Below are positions 1,369 through 15,667 of a stretch of DNA of 15,840 nt, one piece after another (position 1 is the first letter of the stretch; the number at the start of each line of letters is the position of its first letter). The position numbers were made by a program, and so were the translations under genes. Below the pieces are notes generated by a model. The model was not told where the DNA came from. It ran no database searches and saw only the letters and a program-made list of their open reading frames with translations. The DNA lies in the IMG/VR virus record IMGVR_UViG_3300033892_000023, positions 1 through 15,840 of that record, one strand, 5' to 3'.

Positions 1369-1384
1369 TTTTAAGTTTAATTTG

Positions 1385-1750
1385 ATGAATTTTAGACAAT
1401 CTGGAAAATATTATGAGTATAAAACTTTAGAATTTTTAGAAAAAAATGGCTATAAAGCTATAAGAATTCCAGTTTCTGGAATTGGAAAACAACCGCTTCC
1501 AGATATTATCGCAACTAAGGATAATACAATTTTTCCAATTGAAGTTAAATCAACTTCACAAAATTATGTTGTAGTTGATAATTTTCAAATTGATAAATTG
1601 TTTAAGTTCTGTGAGATATTCAATTTTTGTAATTGTAAACCGTTAATACTAGTTCATTATAAAAAATATAAAAATGTCATAATATATAATTTGAGTCAAG
1701 ATGTCAGAGAAAAAATTAAAATCAAATTTACCTTCAGAGCTAACAGCTAA
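1385..1750 (+). CDS. hjc: Archaeal-type Holliday junction resolvase (SIRV ORF121-like), 121 aa
   Basis: Hjc motifs SGKYYE, RIPVSG, PLPDIIA and IEVKS (PD-(D/E)xK). The ATG at 1385 gives 121 aa. Confidence 0.93.
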   Translation: MNFRQSGKYYEYKTLEFLEKNGYKAIRIPVSGIGKQPLPDIIATKDNTIFPIEVKSTSQNYVVVDNFQIDKLFKFCEIFNFCNCKPLILVHYKKYKNVIIYNLSQDVREKIKIKFTFRANS

Positions 1751-2324: not shown

Positions 2325-5300
2325 ATGAGTTTCTTATTAAATCTTGGAGATTTAGGTACATTTTTTTCAGATGAGCTAACAGCATTAGAAAATTTTGCAA
2401 ATTTCTTAAGCTCTGATTTTATAAACTTTTTTAGTGCAGTAGTTAATGATATTGAAAATGTTGTAAGTTTCTTAGGTCAAGCAATTGGTGATATTCCAAC
2501 TTTTATGCAAAAAATTGCTAATAATTTCTTGCAAATTCTACAAAATTTTGCACAAACTGCAATTCCAGTAGTTTCAGGATTTTTAACATTTCTTGAACAA
2601 CAAATTATAAATGTATTTCAAGATTTGTCTTCTTTAGCTTCTACATTTATTAATGATGCATATTCATTTTTACAAGGTGTTGTAAATGCATTTGCAAATT
2701 TAATAAGTACAATAGTTCAAGATTTTCTAAATAATTTTGGTCAAAATATGAAACATATTAGTTCTGCAATTTCTCAAGTTACTCAATTTTTAACTCCATT
2801 TATCGCTCCAGTCACTTTAGGAAAATTTTTGCCAGCAATAATAGATAAATTAGCTGAAATTTTGCCAGAAGTTGAAATAGATTTAGCGCCAGTTGGCTTA
2901 GGCGGAAAAATTCCAATTAACTTTGGAGAAATTGTAAAAGCTTTCGCAGAAACTTCAGTTGATTTTTTAAATGAAGTAAGAGTAGAAATACAAACTACGC
3001 TTAAGGAGTTTATAAAAGAGCCATTTATTTCAGATTTTAAAATTACTGCGAGAGAAATATTTAATGAAATTGGACTTGGAGATTTACCCTTTGCTGATCC
3101 ACCATTTAGATTAATTGCAAATTGGGTCGGTTCAAGATCATTTTCTGAAATTAAAGATCATCTCAGAGAAACAATACTATTGACCGGATTTCCGGCATGG
3201 TTTACTGATGCTTATCTAGAATCTCCAGTTAATGACTTTATACCTAGAAATCCACTTTTTAGACCAGTAAATATAAGAGATGTAATTTTAGCCTCACAAT
3301 ATGGAATTTTAGATATTAGTTCAGTTTCTCAATATGCCGAAAATAATTTGATAACTCCAAAAACTGCTAAATTAATGTATAATAATCAAACTGCAAGACT
3401 TTTGCAAAGAGCAGTTGAGGAAGGTATAAGACAATTTGTTATTTCTCCAGAAAAAGCTTATCAAGAAATTATAAATAATATAAATTTAGCTGGAAAAGAC
3501 TTATATCTAAAAGTTTTCTCATTAGAGTATAATTATGCAGTTCAAAGAATTGTAAGACAATTTTTAAGATCACTTTTATCAAGAGCATTAACTAATTTTG
3601 GAAGACCATACATAGATTTAAAGTATTTAGAATCTACAGTTCAAAAACTATTTAAAGAACTAAATTATCCTGAAGAAGTCCAAAGCGTTTTTAACGTGAT
3701 GATTGAACAATCTCAAATAGTTTACACTAATCAATTACTTTTAACACAATTAGAACAAATTACTAAGTTAGGAATATTTGACGAAAAGAAGATAAAAGCA
3801 GAATTAAAAGCTAATAATTTCAATGAACAAATAGCACTTACAATTTTAAATTATGAACTCCAATATGTACAATTACAATATATTCTAAAAGAATTTCAAT
3901 TTAAACTTCAAAATTACATTATTAGTTCAAAAGATGCAGAAAAAGAGTTAAAGAAATTGGGCTTTGATTCTTCTATAATCTCTGAGATAATTTTTGAATA
4001 TCAAACTGCACCGTTAACAAAATATCAAATATCTCAAATTGAGAGTTTAGCAAAGAAAGGATATTTATCAGTTGATGAAATTAAAAAACAATTACATTCG
4101 TTAGGCATAATAAGGGAATTTGAAGACATATTTATCAATTACACAAATCAAGAAATTCAAATATCATCAACTTTAAGTATTGCAAAAGAACAATTAAGAA
4201 ACTTCTTAATAGATTCGAAAACTGTAGAAAATGAATTAAAAGCATTAAAAATTAACGAATATCTGATAAACGAGATAATTCAAGAAGAATATAACATAAA
4301 TATTGCTAAATTACAATTATCATATATAGAAACTTTAGCTAAGAATTTATATTATGATCAAACCCAACTATCTGGAGAATTAGCAAAACTTTTGAAAGAT
4401 AAAACTGCAATAGATCTTTATGTTCAAAGATTTTATTATGAATATGTATTTCCAAAAATTGTTAATTATTACGTTAGTTTAGCAAGACATGGTATAATTA
4501 CAGATGTTTCAAAATTGTCTAAAGAAATTGTACAATATGAAATTCAGCCCGCAATACAAGTTTTCCAACTAACGACAGAACTAGAATATATAAAATCATT
4601 ATTGAAAGATTTACAAATTAAACCAACTGATGCTATAAACGAATTGGAAAAATTAGGAATGCAAAAAGATTTAGCTAATTTATTTGTACAAACTTATGTA
4701 CCAACATTTTTCAGTTTACATACTATAATTGGAAATATTATAGAAGGTCAACTTTACAAAGTCGGAAAAATTCCCGTGAATTTAGGAATTGCAGAACAAC
4801 AATTAAGACAACTAGGAATTCCAGATAATCAAATAAAAATAATTATTGAACAATATGCTTCTTCATTTGGCTTAGAAATTTGGAGAAAATTCTTACCTTC
4901 ATTAAGTACAATTGAAACCGCAATAAAGTATAATTATCCAGATAAACAATTAATTGATTACTCATTTATACCTTCTGAATTTCTAAATCTTTATAGTAAT
5001 TTATATCAACATGAACTAGTTGGTCAATATGTTCAATCGTTACGAACTGAATATATTCAACTTCTTACTTATGGAGTTCAAAATATCCAACTTGAAAGTT
5101 TGTTAAAGCAATATGGAATAAATGAAACATTATTAGGAGTTTTCAAATTATCCGCACAAATTAGAAAAATATTAACGACTTACCAAGAACTTTATATTAC
5201 GCCATCTAAAGCACTTTCTATTGCTGAATATATATCAAATCCGACGCAATTATTACAAAAAGTATTTAGCGAATTTCAAGTTCCTTCAGATCTGCAAAAT

Positions 5301-5501
5301 ACTTATCTTGAGTATGCAAGAAATAGGAGACTTAGGACGTACGTAAACGACATAATTTCAACAATTAATTTACTATTTGAAAGACATAAAATAGATTTAA
5401 ATACTGCACAATCATATTTACAACAATTGAAAAAATATGGACTGACAGATGAAGAAATACAATTAATATTGTTAAATTGGCAATTACGTGCAAACTATTA
5501 A
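2325..5501 (+). CDS. Large virion structural protein, terminal tail fibre (SIRV ORF1070-like), 1058 aa
   Basis: Size, synteny, an amphipathic N-terminal helical region and ~48 aa helical repeats (e.g. ELKKLGFD, QLHSLGII, ELEKLGMQ). Confidence 0.85.
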   Translation: MSFLLNLGDLGTFFSDELTALENFANFLSSDFINFFSAVVNDIENVVSFLGQAIGDIPTFMQKIANNFLQILQNFAQTAIPVVSGFLTFLEQQIINVFQDLSSLASTFINDAYSFLQGVVNAFANLISTIVQDFLNNFGQNMKHISSAISQVTQFLTPFIAPVTLGKFLPAIIDKLAEILPEVEIDLAPVGLGGKIPINFGEIVKAFAETSVDFLNEVRVEIQTTLKEFIKEPFISDFKITAREIFNEIGLGDLPFADPPFRLIANWVGSRSFSEIKDHLRETILLTGFPAWFTDAYLESPVNDFIPRNPLFRPVNIRDVILASQYGILDISSVSQYAENNLITPKTAKLMYNNQTARLLQRAVEEGIRQFVISPEKAYQEIINNINLAGKDLYLKVFSLEYNYAVQRIVRQFLRSLLSRALTNFGRPYIDLKYLESTVQKLFKELNYPEEVQSVFNVMIEQSQIVYTNQLLLTQLEQITKLGIFDEKKIKAELKANNFNEQIALTILNYELQYVQLQYILKEFQFKLQNYIISSKDAEKELKKLGFDSSIISEIIFEYQTAPLTKYQISQIESLAKKGYLSVDEIKKQLHSLGIIREFEDIFINYTNQEIQISSTLSIAKEQLRNFLIDSKTVENELKALKINEYLINEIIQEEYNINIAKLQLSYIETLAKNLYYDQTQLSGELAKLLKDKTAIDLYVQRFYYEYVFPKIVNYYVSLARHGIITDVSKLSKEIVQYEIQPAIQVFQLTTELEYIKSLLKDLQIKPTDAINELEKLGMQKDLANLFVQTYVPTFFSLHTIIGNIIEGQLYKVGKIPVNLGIAEQQLRQLGIPDNQIKIIIEQYASSFGLEIWRKFLPSLSTIETAIKYNYPDKQLIDYSFIPSEFLNLYSNLYQHELVGQYVQSLRTEYIQLLTYGVQNIQLESLLKQYGINETLLGVFKLSAQIRKILTTYQELYITPSKALSIAEYISNPTQLLQKVFSEFQVPSDLQNTYLEYARNRRLRTYVNDIISTINLLFERHKIDLNTAQSYLQQLKKYGLTDEEIQLILLNWQLRANY

Positions 5502-5518
5502 ATAAATTTGTCATAATT
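5502..5518 (+). promoter_or_regulatory. GTCATAA-type promoter of the ligase gene
   Basis: ATAAATTTGTCATAATT, with the G at 5510, 23 nt before ATG 5533. The spacing matches the other copies. Confidence 0.65.
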
Positions 5519-5532
5519 TTTAGTTTTTACAT

Positions 5533-6348
5533 ATGAGCGTAAACTTATGTCATTATGAAGCGGAAAATATAAGTTATAAAGACTTACAAAATTTACAAGG
5601 AATGATATATTATGAAATTAAGTATGATGGAACTCATGTATGTCTGAAATATGAAAATGAATTAAAGATTAATACTAGAAAAGATATACCGCATGATAAA
5701 GGATTTCAAGAACTTTTTTTAAAAGTTCCAAATATTGAGGAAGTTATAAATTATATAAAGAAAAATAATCAATATATTATTCATGGAGAACTTGTACATA
5801 AAAAGACATCAGCATTACAAATCCATACAAATGAAATTCCGGAATTTATCATATATGATGTCTTTGACAAAGAGAACAATAGATATTTAAGTCCGCTTGA
5901 AGTTGATAGCGAAATTTATTATTGGTATCCTGAAATTTGTTTAGATTTAGATGACATAGTTCACGATATAACTAAAGAAAGACTTGAAGGATTAGTAGCT
6001 AAAATTTATAATCCAAAATTTACAAATTGTAAAGAAGGACAAAATTTCAATTTATGTCTTTACAAATACAAACCTTACTTTTCTGTACTTGGAGTAATAT
6101 TTAAACCAATTAGAAGAGAAATTGATGTTAGACAATTATCATTTTTATTAGGAGAAATAGATAATGATTTAAAGAATAATAAAGATGAATGGTATAGAAA
6201 TCATCAAGATCTTTACAAGTTCTTACTTTCAAATAAAGATAAAATAATACAGATACTACAAAACGAAAACTTCATATTACAAATTGAGAAAGAAACACAT
6301 TTAAACATTAAGAAAATTAAAGAATACATTATGAACTTCAAAAGATGA
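5533..6348 (+). CDS. ATP-dependent ligase-family nucleotidyltransferase, probable RNA ligase, 271 aa
   Basis: Ligase NTase motifs in order: I YEIKYDGTH (K30), Ia NTRK, III IHGELV, IIIa FIIYDVF, IV LEGLVAK, V LYKYKP. A ~90 aa helical-looking C-terminus follows rather than an obvious OB fold. Confidence 0.8.
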   Translation: MSVNLCHYEAENISYKDLQNLQGMIYYEIKYDGTHVCLKYENELKINTRKDIPHDKGFQELFLKVPNIEEVINYIKKNNQYIIHGELVHKKTSALQIHTNEIPEFIIYDVFDKENNRYLSPLEVDSEIYYWYPEICLDLDDIVHDITKERLEGLVAKIYNPKFTNCKEGQNFNLCLYKYKPYFSVLGVIFKPIRREIDVRQLSFLLGEIDNDLKNNKDEWYRNHQDLYKFLLSNKDKIIQILQNENFILQIEKETHLNIKKIKEYIMNFKR

Positions 6349-6364
6349 CAACAATTACAACTTA

Positions 6365-6412
6365 CTATATACATTATATTATGTATAAGTTATGTGTGTT
6401 TATTTTTGTCAA
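6365..6412 (+). promoter_or_regulatory. ORF566 promoter: palindrome TATACAT-N6-ATGTATA (6368-6387), then TTTATTTTT and GTC
   Basis: Read directly. It is nearly identical to the element upstream of ORF269 on the minus strand. Confidence 0.65.
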
Positions 6413-6429: not shown

Positions 6430-8130
6430 ATGAGTTTGCCATATAAAGTACGTTTTAAATTGCCACTTGAGTTTCTGACACTGCAAGACTGGAATAACTT
6501 TGTGCAAAATTTATTATTTATTAATCAATATGGTCCTGCTAAACTTCTCCAGTATTATCAAAATGGCAATTTTCAGAATCTGGATGAAGTTATTGCAAAA
6601 TATTTATATGTTTCAGCGTTAAAAGCTAAAGGTTATAATGTTCTTCATAATTTATCACAACCTCAAGCTTATACATTTGGTGAAGGAAATCAACAGCCAT
6701 TTAAAAGCATGGCAAATAAGCCAATAATTCAACTGAAGTCTGTAATATTTCCAATTCTAAATTTTCAGATACAATTATCTAAAGTTAGTAAACAATTACA
6801 ATTATTAATTCCTAAAGTAATTTCTAAAATTGTAACTCCAAATCAAATTGCTGGAACACAATTTACATTTTCAGGAACTTCAAATGTACAAACATTAATA
6901 GAAGATTATTTAGATCCATCATATTTACAAACTTGGAGAGAAATAATAATACAAAATCTAGGCAGTTCTGTAGTTCAAATTAATAATTCTATCTATCTAA
7001 TGCCTAAAAATTGTTTAAAGATAACTGTAAGTTCACCAAGTGAAATTCAATTAACCGCACAAACTCCAACTTTGCTAAGTGAAGAAATTGAATTTGTTGG
7101 AATTCCTATAACATTTTATACAATTACAATAACAAATTCACAGAGTGATCCAACTCCTTCACCATTTCAACAATTGTTAAATTTGAATTTATCATCTATA
7201 TTATCTAGCTCGTCTCAACTTTTAAATTTACAATTTTGCTTAGATGTTAATTGCAATACTCCATTATATGCATGGATTGAAAGTTTCAATTCTAATTTAT
7301 CAAGTGTTTATATTTGGATTAATTTGCCAACTTCAATTCCGGCTAATTCATCAATTACAATTTATATGTTTGTTAGAAATTCAATTCAGTATCCTTATAC
7401 TGGAATGAGACCAGATTTATCCGCGAGTTATGCACAATATGATAATGGAAAAAATATATTTTTAATTTATTTTAATGGTAATGAACCATTATCTAATTTT
7501 AATAATCAAGGAAATTCATTAACTCAAATATCTACAACTGGGCCGTTAGGAAATACAATAAATGCAATTTATATAAGTGGTTATAATTCACATTTTGGAT
7601 TTGTATATACTGCAAAATCTATACCAAATCAAGCAGTAATTGCAGAATCATCAGTGATAGATCTAGGAAATCAAACAGGCGGATTAAATGCAGATAATGG
7701 ATTTTCTTCTATAGTTGATAGTACTTCAATTGGTAATTTAAACGCAATAAGTGTGGATATGGGGTATTCTGGTTCTTATTTTTCTAATGATTACTTTATA
7801 AGTGGAACTCAAACTTCTGATTTAAACCCAGCAGGAACTGCAGTATCACAGTGGCTTTATGCATGGGTCGTATATTCTGGAACATCAAGTACTTCATGGT
7901 ATGGATGTATAGCACCACAACTTTATAGTTCTTCAGGCGGTTATTGTGGTACAGTTGGCAATAATCCATTTTCTAGTTCTTCTCAACTATATTTAGGTAT
8001 AATTGGTAGTGTAAATTCTAGTTATCAGTGGCAAACTGCATGGAATTTTATGAGATTAAGAGCTTATCCTCCAAACGGTACAATGCCTTCAAATTCTCAA
8101 CCGCAAAAAACAATAATTCTAGTAAGTTGA
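6430..8130 (+). CDS. Virion structural protein (SIRV ORF564-like) with a C-terminal DUF2341/lectin-like beta domain, 566 aa
   Basis: Synteny and size. The DUF2341-like segment reads ITITNSQ..PTPSPFQQLL...LYAWIE...IWINLP.SIPANSSITIY...YDNGKNIF, and the C-terminus is S/T/N/G-rich. Confidence 0.8.
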   Translation: MSLPYKVRFKLPLEFLTLQDWNNFVQNLLFINQYGPAKLLQYYQNGNFQNLDEVIAKYLYVSALKAKGYNVLHNLSQPQAYTFGEGNQQPFKSMANKPIIQLKSVIFPILNFQIQLSKVSKQLQLLIPKVISKIVTPNQIAGTQFTFSGTSNVQTLIEDYLDPSYLQTWREIIIQNLGSSVVQINNSIYLMPKNCLKITVSSPSEIQLTAQTPTLLSEEIEFVGIPITFYTITITNSQSDPTPSPFQQLLNLNLSSILSSSSQLLNLQFCLDVNCNTPLYAWIESFNSNLSSVYIWINLPTSIPANSSITIYMFVRNSIQYPYTGMRPDLSASYAQYDNGKNIFLIYFNGNEPLSNFNNQGNSLTQISTTGPLGNTINAIYISGYNSHFGFVYTAKSIPNQAVIAESSVIDLGNQTGGLNADNGFSSIVDSTSIGNLNAISVDMGYSGSYFSNDYFISGTQTSDLNPAGTAVSQWLYAWVVYSGTSSTSWYGCIAPQLYSSSGGYCGTVGNNPFSSSSQLYLGIIGSVNSSYQWQTAWNFMRLRAYPPNGTMPSNSQPQKTIILVS

Positions 8131-11306: not shown

Positions 11307-11349
11307 TAAAAATAAACTCATAACTTATATATCATATTATGTATATAGC
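11307..11349 (-). promoter_or_regulatory. ORF269 promoter, near copy of the ORF566 upstream element
   Basis: The minus strand reads CTATATACATAATATGATATATAAGTTATGAGTTTATTTTT, against CTATATACATTATATTATGTATAAGTTATGTGTGTTTATTTTT at 6365-6407. Confidence 0.65.
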
Positions 11350-14731: not shown

Positions 14732-15667
14732 ATGAAATTGATATTTGGCATTTCTAGTTCAAGAAGTTATTTTTTTAAAACTAATTTTCCAGTCTTAATT
14801 AATCAGTTGAGATTTAGAAAAAAAACATGGAAAAATGAAACATGGATTGATAGTGGCGGATTTCAAATTATAATGCATAACTTAAAAATTTCTGTAAATG
14901 ATGTCTTGCAAAAGTATAAAAGTGTTAATGCTTACGCATTTTTTTCTCTCGATATTCCTAGCGTTTTTGCACCTCTTGACAAACGGAATTTTGAATATTT
15001 TGAGTATCTCTACACAAAAATTGAATGGATAGAAAAAATTATACCAGTTTTACATATTTATCCACTTCAAGATTTGGATAAAGCTATTGATTTTTACAAA
15101 CAATACAGTTATTATTTTGCAATTGGTGGAATAATGACTTCTAGCAAATTAAGAGTTTTACAATATACATTTCCGTGGATTTATTATATAAAAAGAAAAG
15201 TATCTTATCTTCACGTTCTCGGTATATCATCTCCATATTTTTTACAAATTTTTGATAATATGCAAAGCATGGATACCGCATTTTGTTCAATAATTTCAGC
15301 ATTTAAAGAAATAATTTGGTTTAATGGATCTAGGAGATATGTTGGAAATATGAAAACAAAAAGGGAAAGATATAAAATTACAAAAGAAGAAAAAGAACAA
15401 TTGTTTGAATTTTTAGATAAACATAACTTTCCATTTGAATATGATTTAAACAACAGAAAAATTTTAGAAATGATAAATGTATACATGTTACTGTATAATA
15501 ATTGGAGAATTAAGAATAAGTATACAGAATATGCTGATAAATTAAGAAAAATGGGACTAGATAGTTTGACAAGTGAGTTAATTAGAAATTATAAAATTGC
15601 TAGTGAAATATTGAAAGAGAAAAAGAATAAAAAGAAAAAAGAAGATGAATTAGAAACAGAGATATAA
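14732..15667 (+). CDS. TGT-fold guanine transglycosylase (tRNA-guanine transglycosylase or DpdA-like), 311 aa
   Basis: Motifs IDSGGFQ (D40), SLDIP (D74), IPVLH, AIGG, LHVLG and SMDT (D181). There is no CxCxxC Zn site and no PUA domain. It starts 2 nt after the transporter stop. Confidence 0.85.
   Translation: MKLIFGISSSRSYFFKTNFPVLINQLRFRKKTWKNETWIDSGGFQIIMHNLKISVNDVLQKYKSVNAYAFFSLDIPSVFAPLDKRNFEYFEYLYTKIEWIEKIIPVLHIYPLQDLDKAIDFYKQYSYYFAIGGIMTSSKLRVLQYTFPWIYYIKRKVSYLHVLGISSPYFLQIFDNMQSMDTAFCSIISAFKEIIWFNGSRRYVGNMKTKRERYKITKEEKEQLFEFLDKHNFPFEYDLNNRKILEMINVYMLLYNNWRIKNKYTEYADKLRKMGLDSLTSELIRNYKIASEILKEKKNKKKKEDELETEI

Follow-up and report, generated by a model that had tools for sequence, protein, structure and literature searches.

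We report here that ORF271, a gene of a Sulfolobus islandicus rod-shaped virus (SIRV), codes for a stand-alone nucleotidyltransferase of ligase type that falls with the RNA ligases, an assignment that is well supported. The gene lies in a stretch of 15,840 bp, called the window from here on, which is the IMG/VR contig IMGVR_UViG_3300033892_000023 and belongs to a Yellowstone-type virus of the genus Usarudivirus. According to profile comparisons and structural models, the product appears to be an RNA-ligase-like, ATP-dependent enzyme whose C-terminal domain (C-domain) is novel; it is common to rudiviruses and a few cellular Sulfolobales. We consider it probable that ORF271 works as an ATP-dependent ligase of polynucleotides, with an RNA ligase as the likeliest kind, and that its likeliest job is re-joining RNA that has been cut during infection.

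The open reading frame (ORF) starts with the ATG at 5533. A database gene call (P0001, 248 aa) begins at the internal M24 and thereby drops 23 conserved N-terminal residues (window 5533-5601). The 271-aa reading is the correct one, because residues 1-23 are conserved across the orthologues, including N4, C6, Y8 and E9. An earlier sequence-only reading of the window had recognised six ligase motifs in this frame, and all six are found at the residues it gave and are conserved in the orthologues: motif I (EIKYDGTH, 28-35, with K30), Ia (NTRK, 47-50), III (HGEL, 84-87), IIIa (FIIYDV, 105-110), IV (EGLVAK, 152-157) and V (KYKP, 178-181), in canonical order. In an alignment of 17 orthologues, which are 67-86% identical to the window protein, the residues K30, G33, H35, T48, R49, H84, G85, E86, Y108, D109, E152, G153, K157 and K178 do not vary. 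D32 and K180 are near-invariant, the latter being kept in all but one sequence. By motif, the residues of the nucleotidyltransferase (NTase) domain are K30 (I), T48 and R49 (Ia), E86 (III), Y108 and D109 (IIIa), E152, G153 and K157 (IV) and K178 and K180 (V). Having the KxDG lysine followed in order by motifs Ia, III, IIIa, IV and V, the protein would belong, as judged from its sequence, to the covalent nucleotidyltransferase superfamily.

The Pfam family RNA_ligase (PF09414) matched ORF271 with 38.5 bits against a gathering cut-off of 27, over residues 27-162 and profile positions 5-161 of 171, and this domain is precomputed for most of the homologues. We found 37 full-length homologues among 5.8 billion proteins, nearly all of them of 270-272 aa and 67-86% identical. 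The median pairwise dN/dS of the orthologues was 0.18, alike in both domains, which indicates purifying selection, and all 12 orthologues checked were intact. Could ORF271 be a decaying or chance ORF without any function? Its orthologues appear in the GenBank records only as 'hypothetical protein', and the gene is missing in some genomes. However, the homologues that keep a length of about 271 aa, the dN/dS of ~0.18, the 12 intact frames and the Pfam score above threshold effectively refute this explanation. The basic identification of the domain is not new, as an automatic flag in UniProt precedes it: the SIRV5 and SIRV11 orthologues are named 'RNA ligase domain-containing protein' there. Furthermore, one orthologue was labelled 'ATP dependent DNA ligase domain' by JGI.

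Regarding the fold, the best AlphaFold2 model of the full-length protein (pLDDT 80, pTM 0.66) is beta-rich in residues 1-181 and contains only helices afterwards (pLDDT ~87-96), so there is neither an OB fold nor a motif VI. The C-terminal 90 residues modelled alone reached a pLDDT of 92.5. The sequence-only reading had anticipated such a helical tail, and the missing OB fold makes a DNA ligase or a capping enzyme less likely. When the model was compared with the PDB by Foldseek we obtained 61 matches at E<=0.001, and the best 50 of the 61 were all ligases, which identifies the adenylyltransferase fold. The best 23 were RNA ligases or RNA-ligase-like proteins, including an Aquifex protein (3qwu) that was deposited as a putative DNA ligase. 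Pab1020 was the top match (2vug, 1.7e-7), and MthRnl, T4 Rnl1, the Palaeococcus ligase, fungal Trl1, T4 Rnl2 and Naegleria Rnl5 (NgrRnl) were also found, with DNA ligases (ASFV, T4), the first that have a DNA-bound structure, following from 3e-5. The TM-scores to the PDB ligases were modest (0.43-0.48), because the catalytic core alone superposes. Among the predicted viral structures of BFVD, the matches after the SIRV11 orthologue were phage and giant-virus RNA ligases. Thus, the RNA-ligase-type enzyme that the sequence-only reading had proposed is favoured both by PF09414 and by the ranking of RNA ligases above DNA ligases in the comparison of the model.

A loop after motif III (KKTSALQIHTN, residues 90-100, window 5800-5832) is near-invariant, yet it is the sole segment of at least three residues with a pLDDT below 50. 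It may be a substrate-binding loop that becomes ordered upon binding.

The C-domain has its own set of invariant residues, namely FLLGEIDNDL (204-213), W220, N223 and H224. Its model had no match in the PDB by Foldseek (best E=4.3), and hhalign comparisons with the C-domains of T4 Rnl2 and of phage-type proteins were not significant, small helical domains being hard to match. The domain is without a structural or sequence match beyond the rudiviral family and its cellular sister family, which is described below.

This matters for the placement of ORF271, as the families Rnl1-Rnl6 differ by definition in the domain that is added to a common NTase core, and these added domains set the substrate (PMC6379707, PMC4408790). 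A broader profile, which includes the phage relatives, reached solved ligases of the families Rnl3 (5e-12) and Rnl5 (4e-9) as well as T4 Rnl2 (8e-8), whereas DNA ligase 1 was reached at 1e-4 and in the motif I region only. In the profile alignment with T4 Rnl2 the pairs are K30/K35, R49/R55, E86/E99, D109/D120, E152/E204 and K178,K180/K225,K227. The paired residues of T4 Rnl2 are essential. Like T4 Rnl2, ORF271 is a stand-alone viral gene whose product has PF09414, an N-terminal adenylyltransferase with the catalytic residues in register and an all-helical C-domain of ~90 residues. Nevertheless, its NTase is of 181 aa versus ~243, its motif I has His and not Asn, and the C-domain has no detectable similarity, so that both signatures of the Rnl2 family, which also includes the kinetoplastid RELs, the helical C-domain of the T4 Rnl2 ~244-329 type and the KxxGxN motif I, are lacking.

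The best structural and profile matches belong to Rnl3 (Pab1020, MthRnl and the Palaeococcus pacificus ligase), whose members are also from thermophilic archaea. These enzymes, of ~380 aa, begin with a domain that precedes the NTase and continue behind it with dimerisation and C-terminal domains, all of which are missing in ORF271: K30 is only 30 residues from the start, the protein has 271 aa and the matches cover the NTase core only. Rnl5 (Naegleria NgrRnl, Deinococcus DraRnl) shares a PF09414-type NTase core, but it has an N-terminal domain and no C-terminal appendage (PMC4408790), which is the reverse of the layout of ORF271, with no N-terminal domain and a C-domain of 90 aa. For the group of Rnl1, Rnl4 and Rnl6 (T4 Rnl1, CthPnkp, Trl1), which is characterised by an Rnl1-like N sub-module and a PF09511-type NTase, there was no PF09511 match at E<=1, and the matches to 2c5u and Trl1 had an RMSD >10 A. 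ATP-dependent DNA ligases have an OB fold with motif VI after motif V, which ORF271 does not have, and the NCBIfam DNA-ligase models gave it 16-20 bits versus cut-offs >217. Rnl6 was named for having a C-domain with no structural relatives, and by this criterion ORF271 would form a clade of its own, as far as the models can tell.

A search of 1.84 billion representative proteins with the ORF271 family profile gave strong E-values only for its own cluster. The next match was a protein of 321 aa (P0039, 1e-7), which aligned across both domains, followed by PF09414 proteins of 270-320 aa (P0042-P0053, 1e-5 to 1e-3). Two of their contigs were examined and are phage-like, one of them with tail and capsid genes. 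These proteins of uncultured tailed phages are the nearest relatives beyond rudiviruses and Sulfolobales, and they have a similar size and an NTase with a helical tail. They differ in motif I (KRDGSN) and in having a C-domain motif of their own (SEIxGAIDK...MPxIAK...KH), which is not significantly related to the C-domain of ORF271. MAFFT paired GEIDNDL with the phage SEIxGAIDK motif; we did not take this pairing as homology, given that Foldseek and hhalign found no significant relative of the C-domain.

The search with P0039 led to 'hypothetical proteins' of 314-324 aa in the chromosomes of Stygiolobus caldivivus and Sulfurisphaera ohwakuensis. Scanning genome contigs with this cellular family added two more genomes, Metallosphaera javensis and a Thermoprotei metagenome-assembled genome (MAG), while an earlier scan of genome contigs with rudivirus-specific peptide patterns had found nothing. 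This distant sister family of cellular Sulfolobales is new in this analysis. Its members P0058, P0060 and L055 are 23-27% identical to ORF271, and the family keeps K30, D32, G33, T34, E86, F105, D109, E152, G153, K157, K178, Y179, K180 and P181. As D198, E208, H224, L227 and F230 of the C-domain are also conserved, the whole two-domain protein is common to the rudiviral and the cellular families. The cellular proteins differ by an extra N-terminal helical extension of ~55 residues, by KHDGTQ in motif I and by Lys in place of R49, and they had no Pfam match above cut-off. Their genes stand alone, with no conserved operon and no virion context.

The two families also differ in four cysteines, C6, C37, C166 and C175 (window 5548-5550, 5641-5643, 6028-6030 and 6055-6057), which are invariant in the rudiviral orthologues and missing from the cellular ones. 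They might pair as two disulfides or bind a metal, and so stabilise the compact viral enzyme. In Stygiolobus caldivivus (AP024597; L051 8012-8756, 10001-10963) the homologue lies 1.2 kb from a HEPN/MNT toxin-antitoxin pair; the region also holds PaREP1 genes and a transposase, and sugar-nucleotide (rhamnose-type) genes are near the homologue in 3 of the 4 cellular loci. We treated both proximities as unproven coincidence or synteny and not as a functional link. The homologue in the Thermoprotei MAG is seemingly split in two ORFs of 101 and 173 aa (L056 7989-8949), which may be due to a frameshift or mean that it is a pseudogene.

In rudiviruses the gene has a patchy distribution. The sequence-only reading regarded it as an accessory insertion between the homologues of ORF1070 and ORF564 (1058 and 566 aa in the window), two genes that it gave as adjacent in SIRV1/2, and our survey agrees with it on both points. 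A tblastn search of 50,697 phage and archaeal-virus records found ORF271 in 17 only, all of them from Usarudivirus (SIRV4-11 and isolate V60). Among 26 IMG/VR loci with the 566-aa gene, one was uninformative; ORF271 was present in 17 of the other 25, always at the same position, and missing in 8, which were three Icelandic genomes (SIRV1/2/3) and five US-type contigs. The flanking genes abut in SIRV3, with a gap of 136 bp, and in two contigs of 35,450 and 32,308 bp, which we take to be SIRV2 and SIRV1. In isolate V3 there are 88 bp between the 1058-aa and the 566-aa genes, and the gap in isolate V65 is comparably short. A junction scan delimited a cassette of 838 bp whose excision best reproduces the V3 junction, which means that the variable unit is the promoter together with the ORF. 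ORF271 is therefore an accessory gene and not a core gene. The sequence-only reading had also raised the possibility of a universal core gene that was already annotated: the eight loci without the gene speak against universality, whereas the UniProt label on the orthologues means that the annotation did exist. The paper that describes SIRV4-11 mentions no ligase (PMC5454432), and we found no paper discussing the gene. In a divergent rudivirus contig (L022 6843-7166) there is an extra ORF of 107 aa between ORF271 and the 566-aa homologue, and the intergenic site beside ORF271 seems to accept cassettes repeatedly.

The distribution bears on a second role that had been suggested, the sealing of nicks left by the Holliday-junction resolvase Hjc. 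In this explanation the protein is a sealer of DNA ends or DNA nicks, which closes the Hjc nicks of replicative concatemers or, more speculatively, seals nicks in the capsid-bound A-form viral DNA. Hjc is encoded in the same window, and besides the JGI label there is a match to PF01068 (28.5 bits, above cut-off), but it covers residues 16-90 only, that is, motifs I-III. The DNA of rudiviruses is in A-form in the virion (PMC6105669), and Rnl5 may require RNA because the 3'-OH side has to be in A-form geometry (PMC4408790). Nevertheless, the lack of an OB fold and of motif VI, the position of DNA ligases below RNA ligases in every comparison and the absence of the gene from SIRV1/2/3, V3, V65 and five other contigs make the sealing of DNA nicks or hairpins improbable. 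The viruses without ORF271 presumably replicate in the same way, and sealing the nicks of Hjc resolution is unlikely as an essential role.

ORF271 appears to have its own promoter, as the sequence-only reading had claimed on the basis of a GTCATAA box. We found this box at 5510-5516, within the octamer TGTCATAA (5509-5516), 17 nt before the ATG, a spacing that agrees with an mRNA that has no leader or almost none. In the window this octamer occurs 7 times versus 1.33 expected, and 0 of 200 shuffles reached 7 copies. It is also found 15-30 nt 5' of several other ORF starts of the window, and the box recurs there. We regard the promoter as putative, its function being suggested by position and recurrence.

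The location of the gene directly 3' of a tail-fibre gene and 5' of another virion gene raises the question of whether ORF271 acts chiefly in assembly or as an accessory virion factor, its ligase activity being secondary or lost. The precedent is T4 Rnl1 (gp63), which also promotes tail-fibre attachment, and the structural matches in BFVD include phage proteins with the name 'RnlA RNA ligase and tail fiber attachment catalyst'. We think that this is very unlikely, since purifying selection has kept all the catalytic residues and the cellular sister family occurs outside any virion context. Moreover, the gene has a putative promoter of its own without the 27-nt element of its downstream neighbour, and viruses without the gene exist as isolates.

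The element in question, TATACATWATATKATRTATAAGTTATG, contains a 10+10 palindrome and has 2 copies in the window versus 0 expected, at 6368-6394 (+) and 11319-11345 (-). The copies sit 5' of the 566-aa gene and of a 269-aa minus-strand gene, and the element looks like an operator common to both, a suggestion made from the sequence. The copy at 6368-6394 is at the 3' edge of the ORF271 cassette.

As to the mechanism, we infer the use of ATP, the RNA substrate and the repair role. By comparison with classic ligases, K30 would attack ATP and give a lysyl-AMP enzyme, the AMP would then be transferred to the 5'-phosphate end, and the attack of the 3'-OH end would close the break. The C-domain would select the substrate, as the appended domains do in Rnl1 and Rnl2, and this substrate would be a host or viral RNA, such as a tRNA, cut during infection. 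An optional and separately promoted viral gene points to a function in conflict, and by analogy a counter-defence role of ORF271 is plausible. The model for it is the repair by T4 Rnl1 and Pnkp of the damage done by PrrC, in which, as may be the case here, a virus-encoded ATP-dependent RNA ligase is able to undo the RNA cutting of the host. ORF271 differs from the T4 system in having a different C-domain, no PF09511 match and no Pnkp-like partner that we could find. The sequence-only reading had already seen no end-healing kinase or phosphatase in the window. Likewise, we found no Pfam domains of kinases, phosphatases or cyclic phosphodiesterases in the ORFs of the window or in 20 larger SIRV9 ORFs (at least 112 aa), a search that could miss smaller or highly divergent proteins. 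Without a kinase/phosphatase partner, the enzyme would act directly on breaks with 3'-OH and 5'-phosphate ends or lean on the end-healing of the host.

This restricts the nucleases that could be countered. The ends left by metal-independent RNases are not joinable by ATP-dependent ligases without a kinase and a phosphoesterase (PMC7824862). Therefore, if the targets were the cuts of HEPN/Csx1 or of anticodon nucleases, which are metal-independent RNases, host end-healing would be needed, as no healing enzyme was found. Metal-dependent nucleases of the PIN/VapC type leave 3'-OH and 5'-phosphate ends, which would be directly ligatable, and toxins of this type are abundant in Sulfolobales. Furthermore, toxin-antitoxin systems are already known targets of Usarudivirus anti-defence genes (PMC11065993). 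As a tentative possibility, ORF271 might be a single-enzyme counter-defence that needs no healing partner and re-joins 3'-OH/5'-phosphate breaks, for instance those made by PIN/VapC-type toxins. The PADLOC defence models had no match for ORF271 or its relatives.

An RNA ligase could also serve RNA processing and not repair against defence, either by circularising or joining single-stranded small RNAs of the virus or the host, as is done in vitro by archaeal Rnl3 enzymes, or by closing the RNA-primed ends of RNA:DNA hybrids. Rnl3 enzymes give the best matches in structure and profile, and one of them, MthRnl, circularises single-stranded RNA (PMC4797309); nick-sealing RNA ligases take DNA on the 5'-phosphate side (PMC4408790), and processing would agree with the fact that we found no end-healing partner. 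However, ORF271 does not have the N-terminal and dimerisation domains that define Rnl3, and an accessory, patchy gene is better suited to conflict than to core processing, so we find this role rather unlikely.

Several observations weigh against ORF271 being an RNA ligase that repairs cut RNA. The full-length model is moderately confident, the other four models having a pLDDT of 62-70, and was built on a shallow alignment of 17 sequences. Motif I ends in an invariant His (KYDGTH), at a position where Asn is usual in RNA ligases and Arg in DNA ligases. The narrow family profile retrieved no ligase in sequence searches of the PDB, nor did the single protein or the profile enlarged with the cellular family, and direct profile comparisons with T4 Rnl2 were not significant, reaching E=0.087 with the enlarged profile. 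Moreover, the gene is surrounded by virion genes, with nothing related to RNA in its neighbourhood. Finally, the repair role comes from the analogy with T4.

With a compact thermophilic ligase that has an unmatched C-domain and is common to cells and viruses of Sulfolobales, the RNA ligases would gain a family, probably with a new substrate preference. If the single-enzyme counter-defence is true, ORF271 would be the first known case of an archaeal virus that uses RNA repair in this way; we found no paper on a Sulfolobales virus that repairs RNA to escape host defence. The natural presence and absence of the gene among cultured isolates (V60 and SIRV4-11 with it, V3 and V65 without it) makes the role directly testable. 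In addition, a small ligase from a virus whose host is thermoacidophilic (acidic hot springs) is a potential reagent.

The coordinates of the gene, its domains, its cassette and its neighbours are given in Table 1.

Table 1. Features of the window around ORF271, with the evidence for each
Feature	Position in the window	Strand	Evidence or remark
Hjc Holliday-junction resolvase gene	1382-1750		Pfam Hjc
Upstream neighbour, 1058-aa homologue of SIRV2 ORF1070 (tail-fibre protein)	2325..5501	+	
Promoter-like region of ORF271 (putative)	5498..5532	+	TATA-like box rich in A/T (TAAATAAATTT), which overlaps the stop codon of the gene before it and is followed by TGTCATAA
Presence/absence cassette, 838 bp	5502..6339	.	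Junction scan; excision best reproduces the junction of isolate V3
ORF271, RNA-ligase-like covalent nucleotidyltransferase, 271 aa + stop	5533..6348	+	Motifs, Pfam, model, orthologues
Nucleotidyltransferase (adenylyltransferase) domain, aa 1-181	5533..6075	+	PF09414, conservation, fold matches, T4 Rnl2 register
All-helical C-terminal domain (predicted), aa 182-271	6076..6345	+	AlphaFold; conserved residues
Downstream neighbour, 566-aa homologue of SIRV ORF564, DUF2341 domain	6430..8130	+	Pfam

The window is 91% identical to SIRV9 at the nucleotide level across 97% of its length, and its gene order is that of SIRV9. The assignment of the upstream neighbour follows SIRV2, in which ORF1070 is the tail-fibre protein (PMC7911016). 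Further 3' in the window there are an ORF of 511 aa and genes for a methyltransferase, a glycosyltransferase and a permease, as well as a tRNA-ribosyltransferase-like gene. The last one (14732-15667) is a divergent, core, tRNA-related gene of the same genome: RefSeq names its SIRV9 counterpart queuine tRNA-ribosyltransferase, and a Pfam scan of the window ORF at E<=0.01 gave nothing. Scanning the window for Rfam families and tRNAs gave no match.

In SIRV3 there is a DUF1874 gene (AcrIII-1 family) between Hjc and ORF1070 (L002 4511-4855), and at this place the window has an unrelated ORF of 69 aa (1701-1910). A tblastn search for DUF1874 homologues, which covered the window and the complete SIRV9 record, found none. 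We considered a link between ORF271 and the loss of AcrIII-1 in US-type viruses and dropped it, because cuts of the Csx1 type are not ligatable by this class of enzymes without healing. Next to the Hjc gene, at 1335-1368, a near-palindrome with two divergent TGTCATAA boxes separates it from a 93-aa minus-strand ORF (1031-1312), and from its arrangement it is likely a bidirectional promoter.

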